64,000 nucleotides of DNA, taken from assembly GCF_033153115.1 (NCBI RefSeq), contig NW_026889803.1, forward strand, positions 42,966,001-43,030,000, read 5' to 3'. Numbering within the stretch: position 1 is the stretch's first letter; the number at the start of each line of letters is the position of its first letter. A program made the position numbers and the translations under genes. The notes beneath the pieces were generated by a model. That model was not told the DNA's origin, ran no database searches, and saw only the letters and a program-made list of their open reading frames with translations. The stretch is from Saccostrea echinata (taxonomy: Eukaryota). Positions 41,792 through 47,700 of this stretch are shown piece after piece.

Positions 41792-44700
41792 ATTTCAAGG
41801 GGAGATAATTAGGAATTACTGAAAAATAATGGCATCATTTAAAAATCTTCTTCTCAAGAACCATAGGGCCAGGAAAGATGAAACTCATGTGGAAGCATCC
41901 TTAGGTAGTGTACATTCAAGTTTGTTCAAATCATGACCCCCGGGGGTAGGGCGGGGCTGCAATGGAGGATCAAAGTTTTACATAGAAATATATAGGAAAA
42001 ATCTTTAAAAATCTTCTTCTCAAGAACAGCAAAGCCCTAATTGGTCATATTTATATGGAAGCATCCTCAGGTAGTGTAGATTCAAGTTTGTTCAAATCAT
42101 GACCCCCGGGGGTAGGGTGGGGCCACAATGGAGGATCAAAGTTTTACATAGAAATATATAGGAAAAATCTTTAAAAATCTTCTTCTCAAGAACAGCAAAG
42201 CCATGATGAGTCATATTTATATGGAAGCAATCTCAGGTAGTGTAGATTCAAATTTGTTCAAACCATGGCCCCCGGGGGTAGGGCGGGGCTGCAATGGAGG
42301 ATCAAAGTTTTACATAGAAATATATAGGAAAAATCTTTAAAAATCTTCTTCTCAAGAACAGCAAAGCCATGATGAGTCATATTTATATGGAAGCATCCTG
42401 AGGTAGTGTAGATTCAAGTTTGTTCAAATCATGACCCTGGAGGGTAGAGCAGGGCCGCAATGGAGGATCAAAGTTTTACATAGAAATATATAGGAAAAAT
42501 CTTTAAAAATCTTCTTCTCAAGAACAGCAAAGCCATGATGAGTCATATTTATATGGAAGCATCCTGAGGTAGTGTAGATTCAAGTTTGTTCAAATCATGA
42601 CCCCCGGGGGTAGGGCGGGGCCACAATGGAGGGTCAAAGTTTTACATAGAAATATAAAGGAAAATATCTTCTTCTGAAGAACTGCAAACCATGATTAGTC
42701 ACTTTGATATGGAAGCATCCTGAGGTAGTGTAGATTCAATTTTGTTCAAATGATGACCCCCAGGGGTAGGGTGGGGCCCAATGGGGGAAGGAAAGTTTTA
42801 CATAAGAACATATAGAAAAAATATTTCTTCTCAAGAACAGAAAAGCTATGTTTAGTCATATTGATATGGAAGCATCCTCAGGTAGTGTAGATTCAAGTTT
42901 GTTCAAACCATGACCCCCGGGGGTAGGGCGGAGCCACAATGGAGGATCAAAGTTTTACATAGAAATATAAAGGAAAATATCTTCTTCTGCAGAACAGAAA
43001 AGCTATGTTTAGTCATATTGATATGGAAGCATCCTCAGGTAGTGTAGATTCAATTTTGTTCAAATGATGACCCCCAGGGGTAGGATGGGGCCCAATGGGG
43101 GATGGAAAGTTTTACATAAGAACATATTGTAAAAATATTTCTTCTCAAGAACAGAAAAGCTATGTTTAGTCATATTGATATGGAAGCATCCTCATGTAGT
43201 GTAGATTCAAGTTTGTTCAAATGATGACCCCTGGGATAGGGAGGAGCCACAATGAGGGATCAAATTTTTACAAAGGAATATATGGGAATTTTTTTTAAAA
43301 AATCTTCTCAAGTACAACAAAGCCATTTGTTATATTGACATGGAAGCATCATCAGGTAGTTTAAAATTCAAGCCCCCCCCCCTCCCCCGGTCTTTTCAAT
43401 ACTGAACTGATTGTGCTTTTGCTTAGCCAATGTGCTCAGGTGAGTGATGTGGCCCATGGGCCTCTTGTTTAAGACATTATATTAAATTTTTTTATGTGGT
43501 TGATAGTGTAGAAAAGGATTTACATGCATGACTCATTGTCATCGGTATTTATTCTTATTTGCCGTGTTTTTTGTACTTTTGAAAATTGTTCTGCAAAAAA
43601 GAATTATATCTTGCTTATGATATCAAGTACTGGATTATTGCATAATGATTTTACATTATCATGAATTTAAAAAAAAAAAAATTAGAACATCTTTAACATG
43701 TATACCATTACAATTCAGGATCATACATACAATAAATAAACTTCATATTTCCAGGACTGTACATGTGAAGAGTTTTGTCCAGAATGTTCTGTAGAGTTTA
43801 CATTGGACGTGAAATGTACAGAGGATCAGACCAAACATGTGACCAGTGCTGACCTTATGTCATCCAACCCAAAAGTTGTGCCTGTATGTATTCACTGCTA
43901 ATCATGTACATGTATATGATTGATAAATGTCAATTTCAGTCAAGGCAATTATCTTTATTGCATATTTATTTCAAAACAGTTACATTACAATGAAATACAT
44001 GTACATTACTTAAAATGCAGAATGATGCTTTTCATTGTCATGCAGGTGCATGTAGTTAAAATGTTTATTACACTTAAATTGATGCCAATTAATGAAAAGA
44101 ATTAAATATACATATGGATAAATCAATGATACATGGCTAAAATGTTCAAATCCAAAAAAAGTATTAAAAAGTGCTTTTTTTTCTCCAATGTAAAATAAAT
44201 AAATAAAAGATTAAAAAAAAAAAACTAAAAAAAAAACAAACAAAAAACTAGATACTAAAAGGGCAATAGGATTGGCACAATAAAATCAGTTATTACAATT
44301 TTAAAAAAATCTGTAAGCTTTTAGAGATATTGAAGGACAACCTGCTTGATATCCTGAAGACTATAGCGGTCAGCAGGGTTAGTGAAGAGACAATGTTTTA
44401 CTAAATTGGTCAATGATTCACTGGCAGTTGTAGGAATTTGTGGTATATTTCCCTGCATAATGTCCATGTATGCTGAAAATGGGTTCATCCCACTTCTGTC
44501 ATAGAAAGCTGGTTCTAAAGCAAGCATTTCATACACCAGGCAGCCTATGTTCCAGGAATGAGCTTTATCATCAGGTGTCTGGCGACTTAGTACTTCAGGT
44601 GCCTCATACACAGGGGCATTCATTCGGGCCTCCATGACTGTGACAGTTTCAGTTTCATCATCAGGTGGCAAGTCTATTGAAATTTGACCATTTTTGTGGT

Positions 44701-47700
44701 ATCTAATGTTATGAGATGATATTTTGCTGATAGGGGTGATATGGCAATAATTGAGAGTATCTATTATACACTTTAGGGTATGCCATATGGTTCTGTGATC
44801 TAATGTGGTTCCAGATTCTTTGGCTTTATCTATTTTCTCTGCTAATGATTCGGAAGGCAGTAGGATACAACAAAAGAAATCACCTTCTTCAAATAATCCT
44901 ATCAGATCAGGGAAAGTGAATTCAGTAACTGAAAGCATGAAATGATTCAGATAGTAAATATGTCAAACAAATGCGGTTGAAAAATTATTTAAATCATACT
45001 GTTATCAAGAGCATTGCCATTGAACATGCATATTATGACAAAGGTATAACAGTTTTTAAAACTAATACTAGTAGAAAATAAATGACTTTATTAAATTTTC
45101 AATCTTTTCAGCTGTTATTTTTTTTTAAATCATTACATTTTGGCATGACTCTTAAGATGACATCCTCATTATTGAGACAACAGGTTGCTGGGTAACACTG
45201 ATGGACATGGTCCTCTGGGCTTATACGTTCTACATCAATGATGAAGTCCTTCTTACTCAGGGTGCCAATGCTAAGCTGTATTGAGCTAGGTAGTGGGAGG
45301 TGATGAATCTATAAACAGAGAGTTTGGACACAAGTCGTGGTTGACATAATAATTTAAGTGTAATGGATATGTTTCTTGACATCTGAATTGTTCATTATTG
45401 GATGCACATATATATTTGTATTGCCCCAGTCTTTGCACATGTAAAAATGTATGGTTATATCAGTCCTAACTTTGCATCGATGCCTCTGTAAATTCCCACT
45501 CATCATTTTCAAATTAAAAAGAATATATGTGCCACTTTTTAAATACATGTACTGTGTATCACTTTAACCTTTAGCGAAGGTAGAGAAAAGGTCTTTTTAC
45601 TTTACTTCTGAGGAGAAAAAAAAACAATTTAAAAGTCTGACTTGAATGAGTTTAATTAAAACAAATCATTTTTACCAACAAAAAAAAACAACTTCTAAGC
45701 AGCGTGGGCAGTTAAATGAGGCAAAAACAATAAGCTAGACTGTTATAACCACAAATGAATATTATTTTATGCAACAAATACATCTATATAAATTTGAAAG
45801 CAGTAATAGAGTAAACATACCTGGTGTATCCGTTTAAGTGTTAGAGTCTGTATGATGACCTTTCTGCAGAGACTTTGTAAGGTGGATGGGTCCCTTGGCT
45901 CTTCTTGCTCATAGACAGTTTTGGAAATGGGATCATATAATCTTAACATAATTGTCTAACCCATTGCTGTCACAACCAATAAATAGCCTAGAAATTTGAA
46001 AACACTTCTTACACAATGCAATGAATGAATGCCTAATTTTGTACTAATGAAAAATTCAGTGGTAGAATTTTGTGTATATCTTTAAGGTCAATCAAAGTGT
46101 GTCATACATGTATTATATGTCATTGAAAATTTTGAAATAAGGCACAAACTGATTACAACTTATTGAAAAAAAAAATTTTCTTGAACAGGTAACATCCAGA
46201 AATAAAGAAGAAACAAGTGAATATGAAGACACAGATGGTAATTTTGTTGCTCCTCTATGTTGTTTGTTTTGTCTTCATGGGTCCTTATTTGGTGATAAAT
46301 TCATATTCCATCTTATTTTAGATTATTTTAAATTCTTTGAATTGTATTTTAAGCAATAGCATTTAGGAATGTCTAGTTTTATTCTTATTTTTTTAAATAA
46401 GAGGAAAAATATGTAGGATCTATTTTCATTATATCTTTCTGTAGGAAATATCCCTTACATGAAACAGGGAACAGATAAACTGTGATTTTTGTATTTTTGC
46501 CAGATATTTTGATTGTTAAACTTCGAAAAGGTCAGGAACTAAAGGTGCGAGCTTTTGCCAGGAAGGGGTTCGCAAAAGAGCATGCCAAGTGGAACCCCAC
46601 ATGTGGTGTTGCTTTTGAGTATGACCCAGACAATGCCTTAAGACACACTCTTTATCCCAAACCAGAAGAATGGTGAGTCATTTCTTGATTTTAATGTTAC
46701 TTTAATTCCTCGAGCCATTTCTATCTGTGCCTGTCTGTAATAACTGCCATTTGTTACTGAAATATCCCCAGACCAGCCAAAAACAATCATTTAGTTTGTA
46801 ATGAGCAATAAATGAGTCCTCTTAACAAAGGTTTTAAATTAATTAACCCTGACTTAGGATGTGTAGAGTTCAGACTTGAGGGAAAGGGCTTGGGGTTAAA
46901 GATGCTTATACATGTACATGCTTTTTAGAAAATAGCTCCCTTCCAGAATTTTAACATTTTACCCCTGGGTTAGGACCAAAAACAGGGATGGATTGTATTG
47001 AAAATGTATCATATCTTTGTATTTCCATCAAACAAACTGTTTATATAAGTATAATATGGCACCAAATTTGTGAAGTTCAGGGCCCTTAGGCCAATTTTAA
47101 AAAAATTAATTTGTTTGATGAAATCTGACCAACCCATTAAAATTTCCCCTACCTGATAATTATTTTTTTTTCAGAACTGCCAATTTAATGATTGTTTTTG
47201 TTTGCAGTGAAATATAGATTGCCCATATCATTTTGAAAGTTAAGGTTTTATCATTTCTCTAAGACACATTTGATTGAGCCTTTTTTAGCAATAAATATTA
47301 AATCTCTCTAGCTGTACTGTGTATATTGAAAACATACTGGTAAATAAATTTCTAAATCTTATATTTTTATTATGATTATTAATGTGTAAGATAATTTCCA
47401 CAAAAAATATGTTACCTACCTTCCCAACTTGAAAAATGTAGGTCAGAGTAAATCAATAAATAAATTTTTAATAAGGATGGTTATGTCCACAAGGGACATT
47501 TACTGTTTTATATCTATTGTTGTGCCTTATCTATGGAAACATTCTCTTAAAATGCCTCTGAAAATCCAGCAAACATATTGTTGCATGATTCAGGACCAAG
47601 GACCTGTACATTTGTTTAAATGTGCACCTCAATGAATTTTGTTGTACATGTACCATGAATTATTATAATTACAGTATTTAATATTTTTTAATTTTAATTT

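Follow-up and report, generated by a model that had tools for sequence, protein, structure and literature searches.

A SOCS box joined to a degenerate NEK-like kinase domain in the oyster Saccostrea echinata: a candidate class of CUL5-Elongin BC substrate receptor

A window of 64,000 nucleotides from the oyster Saccostrea echinata (GCF_033153115.1, NW_026889803.1, 42,966,001-43,030,000; positions given below without a contig name are those of this window, and (-) marks the reverse strand) holds a three-exon gene for a protein of 302 amino acids. With moderate confidence, this protein is read here as a member of an old animal family that joins an N-terminal hairpin and a canonical SOCS box to a dead, NEK-derived kinase domain, and that most likely serves as a substrate receptor of the CUL5-Elongin BC ubiquitin ligase. 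A search with the third exon found the public 302-amino-acid model XP_061197882.1 of the same species, named "serine/threonine-protein kinase Nek6-like". Because the translations of all three exons are exact substrings of this entry, starting at residues 1, 44 and 102 and with phenylalanine at residue 101, the three-exon spliced model is the same as an existing gene model. All full-length analyses were done on the database protein, and the exons themselves were searched singly. The locus is single-copy in the S. echinata genome.

The SOCS box was recognized by its Pfam profile. XP_061197882.1 matches SOCS_box (PF07525) at residues 21-54, covering profile positions 2-35 of 39, with 29.8 bits (E 7.3e-07) against a curated gathering score of 23.5 bits; the orthologue from S. 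cucullata likewise reaches 29.8 bits, and exon 1 searched alone reaches 19.1 bits. Judged by the profile, the match exceeds chance. The BC box (residues 23-32, 45854..45883 (-)), which is the predicted Elongin C contact, has the pattern T-L-x3-C-R-x2-I and satisfies the consensus (S/T/P)-L-x3-C-x3-(V/I/L) with T23, L24, C28 and I32. The Cul5 box (residues 44-57, 45267..45308 (-)) carries the expected L-P-phi-P core as LPLP at residues 47-50 (45288-45299). Among 25 family representatives, serine or threonine stands at position 23 in 22, leucine at position 24 in 24, cysteine at position 28 and arginine at position 29 in 22 each, and isoleucine or valine at position 32 in 24; in the Cul5-box core, leucine at position 47, one of L, V or I at position 49 and proline at position 50 are found in all 25, and proline at position 48 in 20. 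These columns have the appearance of a textbook BC box followed by a Cul5-box core. A first-pass annotation of this DNA had pointed to a BC box and an LPLP Cul5 box in the N-terminal region, and both are supported by a profile match above the cut-off and by conservation of the BC box and the LPxP core out to cnidarians. An alternative is that the protein is a receptor for Cullin-2, of the VHL-box type, instead of Cullin-5: BC boxes are common to both kinds of receptor, the N-terminal placement of the box recalls some Cul2 receptors, and the Cul5 box of the oyster protein degenerates towards its end, where serine occupies the Y/F position. However, the profile matched is Pfam SOCS_box, over positions 2-35 of 39, and L47 and P50 of the L-P-phi-P core, the defining feature of a Cul5 box, do not vary, so that a Cullin-2 receptor is regarded as improbable.

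Structure prediction agrees with this assignment. The AlphaFold2 (AF2) model, built from a 26-sequence family alignment, has a predicted local distance difference test score (pLDDT) of 89.1 and a predicted template modelling score (pTM) of 0.80, and consists, in order, of a beta hairpin (strands 2-6 and 11-15), three helices and a kinase fold (residues ~55-302). The predicted helices (24-36, 41-46 and 51-58; pLDDT ~87-92) fall on the SOCS box. Residues 1-60 are covered by no single reference, and fold searches with the whole model are dominated by kinases. Exon 1 alone found no match among the PDB sequences, a query too short for this search. For prediction of a complex, residues 1-75 of XP_061197882.1 were combined with residues 17-119 of Elongin C P0271, a full-length spliced Elongin C of 119 amino acids that is 86% identical to the S. 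echinata Elongin C exon over that exon, in three runs with three controls. Co-folding with Elongin B, Elongin C and CUL5 had been put forward in the first-pass annotation as a check, and its Elongin C part came out positive: the interface score ipSAE was 0.72, 0.70 and 0.72, with 0.00 for the best control; this passes a docking mark that 51 of 78 solved complexes attained, against 2 of 108 mismatched pairs. Contact agreement between the runs was at least 86%, and the pLDDT of the partner at least 52. In the predicted interface, residues 19-35 of the oyster protein face residues 80-119 of Elongin C, with the lowest error at L24, C28 and I32, and the BC-box helix is predicted to sit in the canonical BC-box groove of Elongin C. 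A pass of this kind would speak for likeness to a working box and not for binding. A PF03931 search of the genome at a looser threshold located the first coding exon of the oyster's own Elongin C (G000:C22, locus L004), and the strong matches to this profile are Skp1 genes. Two Skp1-type genes or copies lie ~11-13 kb apart (G000:C20:1546651-1548753 and G000:C20:1559861-1559974; loci L001-L003), the second of which has diverged.

The partner of the box had been proposed to be a kinase fold, and this proposal is upheld by the AF2 fold and by the nearest structural match; the domain has lost its catalytic residues. Exon 3 alone matches Pkinase with E 1.1e-15, and XP_061197882.1 does so with 56.7 bits at residues 126-296, above threshold, so that both profiles anticipated in the first-pass annotation are present in one protein. 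The ten best Foldseek matches in the PDB are all human NEK7 (top E 2.4e-13), and VIA-align superposes residues 53-302 of the model on NEK7 21-296 with Z 21.6 and a root-mean-square deviation of 5.4 over 232 aligned residues, a score tied within one Z unit with those of NEK2 and Aurora. The family profile, from which the true Nek6 was excluded, scores 162.8 bits with NEK7, 110.8 with NEK1 and 96.4 with NEK2. Structure and profile therefore agree on NEK6/7 as the nearest kinase, and a true Nek6 shares 23% pairwise identity with the oyster protein. Conservation within the family is strongest in the C-lobe, at the P+1/APE segment, at alphaF and alphaG and in the stretch between these two, and the same parts are held in common with Nek6/7.

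Catalytic columns were read from the family alignment to the true Nek6 P0109, in which the glycine loop, VALK, HRD and DLG are all present. Compared with P0109, the oyster protein is without the glycine-rich loop, has arginine at the position of the beta3 lysine and no column for the alphaC glutamate, and carries lysine at the HRD aspartate position in the remnant of the catalytic loop (residues 169-174, 44708..44725 (-)). Indeed, the long alphaC helix is absent from the AF2 model, in which only about ten residues lie between strands 92-99 and 109-115. The DFG-motif position (residues 185-187, 44669..44677 (-)) reads I-D-L and is degenerate family-wide, its aspartate being retained in Saccostrea and Haliotis and replaced, mostly by asparagine, in the long forms. 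The A-P-E motif at the end of the activation segment (residues 210-212, 44594..44602 (-)) is kept, with P211 and E212 invariant in all family members, and so is the alphaI arginine; both are structural anchors of the C-lobe. On these residues, the domain is a catalytically dead, putative pseudokinase. It could be argued that the database name is right and that the gene encodes an active, atypical Nek6-like serine/threonine kinase which carries a SOCS box, for the automatic annotation says so, Pkinase is above threshold, and the DFG-position aspartate survives in two genera. This is very hard to reconcile with the missing glycine-rich loop, the deleted alphaC region and the substitutions at the HRD aspartate and beta3 lysine, and, when the profile hits were screened for motifs, no family cluster combined HRD and DFG with the glycine loop, whereas most active NEK-like matches did. 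An active kinase is accordingly given very little credence.

The same architecture is distributed well beyond oysters. In a profile search of 1.84 billion representatives, ~25 full-length clusters were found whose match begins at the N-terminus and runs through the whole kinase-like domain. Members were found in oysters (two species of Saccostrea, Ostrea and Magallana), other bivalves (four species of Mytilus, Dreissena, Pinctada and Tegillarca), gastropods (four species of Haliotis, Patella, Bradybaena and Elysia), the annelid Owenia and the cnidarians Rhopilema and Actinia, and all of them carry automatic names only ("Nek6-like", "Nek7-like", "nekl-3-like" or "hypothetical protein"). SOCS_box is detected at E<=0.1 in 24 of 26 aligned proteins (best 6.4e-13), one of the two misses being the true Nek6, and exceeds the cut-off in Actinia (27.3 bits), Dreissena (33.6), Mytilus (26.0), Patella (28.7) and Pinctada (27.2). 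This domain order, for which the first-pass annotation had suggested a search across metazoa, is thus seen in molluscs, an annelid and two cnidarians. A word-index search with the family alignment gave 12 proteins, of which only those of Pinctada and Tegillarca were new, and left the known range unchanged. An Atlas search, covering only clusters of at least 50 members and so giving no evidence of absence, returned generic kinase clusters, none with a SOCS box.

For the phylogeny, rows were picked from the profile-search hits, with fragments under ~270 amino acids excluded and with one true Nek6/7 representative. In the maximum-likelihood tree, the 26 family rows are separated from 43 active NEK-like kinases by a single split, which has a value of 100 in the Shimodaira-Hasegawa-like approximate likelihood ratio test (SH-aLRT). 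Two subgroups are seen; one contains molluscs and the annelid, with short forms without the alphaC region, and the other contains both cnidarians together with longer forms. Since the family spans molluscs, an annelid and cnidarians as one split, fusion of the SOCS box and the putative pseudokinase most likely predates the cnidarian-bilaterian split. CUL5 itself has been reported in Nematostella and Trichoplax and is older than that split (PMC2785787). Some members are enlarged: P0070 and P0152 (400 and 413 amino acids; both from Logan/ENA) represent a subgroup that carries additional insertions, in the N-lobe and ahead of alphaG, and one 90%-cluster member, P0233, is 556 amino acids long.

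The S. echinata genome has, on another contig, a multi-exon Nek6/7 gene (G000:C56:7841285-7845238), which shows 68-83% identity to Nek6 in five of six matched exons and 47% in the first, versus 29% for the studied locus. By this comparison, the oyster has a live Nek6/7 plus a dead, SOCS-boxed relative, and the SOCS-boxed gene, because it is separate from the oyster's true Nek6/7 and belongs to a separate clade, is not a Nek6/7 orthologue. The Nek6 search of the genome also yielded dozens of long, apparently intron-free kinase-like frames with 25-31% identity (e.g. C4:2933418-2933999 and C2:21966833-21967582), three of them within ~45 kb on C10 (C10:5590238-5634630), which suggests a lineage-specific expansion of single-exon kinase genes.

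Coding exon 1 of the gene (45821..45949 (-)) begins with the start codon at 45949-45947 and encodes residues 1-43, among them a conserved beta hairpin at the N-terminus (residues 2-15) and helix 1 of the SOCS box. After intron 1 (45309..45820 (-), 512 nt, GC content 0.30), a GT-AG intron running from GTATGT to TTATAG, coding exon 2 (45137..45308 (-)) contributes residues 44-100 and the first base of codon 101, that is, the Cul5 box and degenerate N-lobe strands. Intron 2 (44929..45136 (-), 208 nt, GC content 0.245), likewise GT-AG (GTAATG to TTTCAG), splits codon 101, TTT (F101), whose last two bases open coding exon 3 (44321..44928 (-)); this exon continues with residues 102-302 (201 codons), covering the remaining N-lobe and the entire C-lobe, and ends with the stop codon at 44323-44321. 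Read-through of intron 1 meets a stop after 17 codons, and the GC content is 0.40-0.44 in the exons versus 0.25-0.30 in the introns. The first-pass annotation had claimed three exons spliced in frame into 302 amino acids, with only two of them, exons 1 and 3, in the list of open reading frames (ORFs); coordinates and frame proved exact, and the list does contain only these two. The putative 5' untranslated region contains, at 45956-45964 (-) and 15 nt upstream of the start codon, a minimal open frame made up of ATG, a single codon and TAG, and a T-rich low-complexity stretch (44190-44255) lies shortly downstream of the stop codon.

Splicing of the SOCS-box exons to the kinase exon can be read from transcripts of relatives. 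A Saccostrea relative has a 302-amino-acid ORF whole on a 1026-nt contig, the Magallana group has 310-amino-acid ORFs whole on contigs of 1090 and 1163 nt, and Mytilus has 302-amino-acid ORFs whole on contigs of 1.06-1.26 kb. Because the complete frame stands on contigs too short for introns of 512 and 208 nt, these exons are joined in real transcripts of the orthologues. In S. echinata, 38-42% of the words sampled from the stretch recur in five runs of transcriptome size (contigs of 33-75 million letters in all), while coding exons account for 48% of that stretch; this share fits a spliced mRNA and is no proof of one.

These data bear on whether the gene is real at all. On the plus strand, the frames 43803-43901 and 46482-46676 flank it and resemble consecutive exons of the gene for RNA polymerase II subunit RPB3; the latter frame matches the Rpb3/RpoA insert domain with 32.8 bits, just under the cut-off of 33.9, and the former has no Pfam match and resembles RPB3 by eye only. 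The SOCS-box gene thus appears to lie antisense within an RPB3 intron. A functional "Pol II cluster", considered from this nesting near an RPRD1B gene, was rejected, as adjacency alone stood behind it. Nesting inside the intron of another gene would also be compatible with a gene-prediction artefact or a decaying pseudogene, but the frame is intact, the splice sites are canonical, GC content is higher in the exons than in the introns, and the AF2 model is confident. Moreover, many molluscs, an annelid and cnidarians have orthologues that agree in length and architecture, the entire protein is encoded on intron-free transcript contigs of relatives, and the word share of about 40% in the five runs is near the coding-exon share. 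Such an origin is therefore considered most improbable.

How the protein might work can be outlined from its parts. The BC-box helix (residues 23-35) would occupy the groove of Elongin C, and the LPLP box (47-50) would select Cullin-5/Rbx2. The putative pseudokinase, having a Nek6/7-type C-lobe (P+1/APE segment, alphaF and alphaG) without the residues for phosphotransfer, would act as a protein-binding module that delivers a target, and the bound target would be ubiquitylated via the CUL5-RING ligase. As a guess, this target may be a ligand or substrate of the Nek6/7 pathway, that is, something that live Nek6/7 also binds. The Elongin C docking gives in silico support to the scheme, and we infer Cul5 recruitment, substrate capture and ubiquitylation from the family's features. 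A bolder version, which is advanced only tentatively and is itself unlikely, holds that a duplicate of Nek6/7 lost catalysis and gained a SOCS box before the cnidarian-bilaterian split, and so became a "substrate-trap" receptor, which would recognize the docking surfaces or motifs that the live Nek6/7 kinase also recognizes (for example Nek9-type activators, ANKS3-type partners or substrates of Nek6/7) and would send these proteins to CUL5 for degradation. If so, the live kinase and the dead one would impose opposite outcomes on the proteins that both recognize, and the family would constitute the first class of cullin-RING receptors built on a pseudokinase.

Several points weigh against a substrate receptor of the CUL5-Elongin BC ligase. 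First, the Y/F residue of the Cul5 box, replaced by serine in the oyster protein, is present in only 11 of the 25 representatives. Second, SOCS_box falls under the cut-off in Haliotis (15.1 bits), Rhopilema (18.3) and Owenia (13.4), and no match to it was found in Elysia. Third, SOCS box-Elongin C structures have been solved many times, and the docking pass may stem from their recall by the prediction model. Fourth, Nek6/7 is not resolved as the specific sister of the family in the tree, where branches are long, and the RNA nature of the five S. echinata runs is only guessed and may be otherwise. A different function for the box can also be proposed. The protein might bind Elongin BC without being a degradative receptor, with the box controlling its own stability, or the pseudokinase might be a stoichiometric decoy, a scaffold or an allosteric regulator of active Nek6/7, of Nek9 or of their partners. 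Many pseudokinases regulate their active paralogues, and SOCS1 and SOCS3 inhibit JAKs directly as well, independently of the box; here, a Nek6/7-type C-lobe is kept and a true Nek6/7 paralogue is present in the same genome. However, the Cul5-selecting LPxP core is, besides the BC box, invariant family-wide, which is hard to explain without recruitment of a cullin, and such a non-degradative role is held to be possible yet rather unlikely. A CUL5-Elongin BC substrate receptor remains the preferred reading, and it is directly testable in sea anemones or oysters.

With regard to novelty, no description of a SOCS box joined to a NEK or to any pseudokinase was found in the full-text literature, a search with most subscription journals outside its coverage that amounts to absence of evidence only. 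The first-pass annotation had spoken of an undescribed class. This holds for the literature on the class and not for the sequences, because the protein and its orthologues are already public as automatic Nek6-like or Nek7-like predictions, with the SOCS_box Pfam hit precomputed; the class appears to be undescribed, its sequences lying in databases unrecognized. The database name is misleading, since the protein passes the sequence-level tests for a SOCS box and fails those for Nek6/7 on catalytic residues and orthology, and dozens of entries called "Nek6-like" or "Nek7-like kinase" are probably misnamed in the same way. A paper on the kinome of C. gigas gives 19 NEKs, with no mention of a SOCS box or of pseudokinases (PMC4883820), and such entries may have inflated this and other NEK counts of oysters and cnidarians. 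A kinase-fold class would add to the SOCS-box receptors a new group of old origin, extending over cnidarians, annelids and molluscs.

SOCS-box receptors are grouped by their substrate-binding domain, which is SH2, ankyrin, SPRY, WD40 or GTPase. The classical receptors of the cullin-5-RING ligase (CRL5), namely SOCS/CIS, ASB, SPSB, WSB and Rab40, have the same bipartite arrangement of a BC box, (S/T)-L-x3-C-x3-(I/V), and an LPxP Cul5 box as the oyster protein, whose box is predicted to form three helices and to contact Elongin C in the same place. The spacing of the two sub-boxes in the oyster protein is of the longer, ASB-like kind (compare ASB9). In the classical receptors, however, the box is C-terminal, whereas in the oyster protein it is N-terminal and preceded by a conserved beta hairpin, and none of the classical receptors has the kinase-fold partner found here. 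LRRC41/MUF1 and ZYG11 are examples of Elongin BC receptors with an N-terminal BC box, which makes its position in the oyster protein less unusual than the first-pass annotation held.

On the kinase side, Nek6/Nek7 (NEKL-3 in C. elegans) is the best match by structure and by profile, is similar in overall size, and has the C-lobe motifs in common with the oyster protein, as well as a short motif right after strand beta2 that is shared with the family (Y-K-A-T-C-L-L-D in Nek6). The oyster protein differs from Nek6/Nek7 in its identity of 23%, in the loss of all catalytic signatures and in the added SOCS box, and mollusc and annelid forms of the family differ further in the deletion of the alphaC region.

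A precedent for an enzyme-derived fold in this place is offered by PCMTD1/2, which are reported to be SOCS-box CRL5 receptors with a methyltransferase-like fold for substrates (PMC12590147). Their fold is of the isoaspartyl methyltransferase type and has no sequence relationship to the oyster protein. In function, the nearest analogue is Tribbles. In TRIB1-3, a dead kinase holds the substrate while a short linear element brings in the COP1 E3 ligase, which is the same logic as that proposed for the oyster protein; the Atlas search also placed Tribbles clusters among the closest neighbours in feature space, which offers no more than a lead and is not evidence of membership. The two are likened as functional analogues only, because Tribbles belongs to a CAMK-like lineage and recruits COP1 via a C-terminal tail peptide, whereas the oyster protein belongs to the NEK lineage and is proposed to use a SOCS box for Elongin BC-Cul5. 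If the proposal is true, the oyster protein and its relatives would be a second independent case, beside Tribbles-COP1, of a dead kinase that acts as the targeting arm of a ubiquitin ligase.

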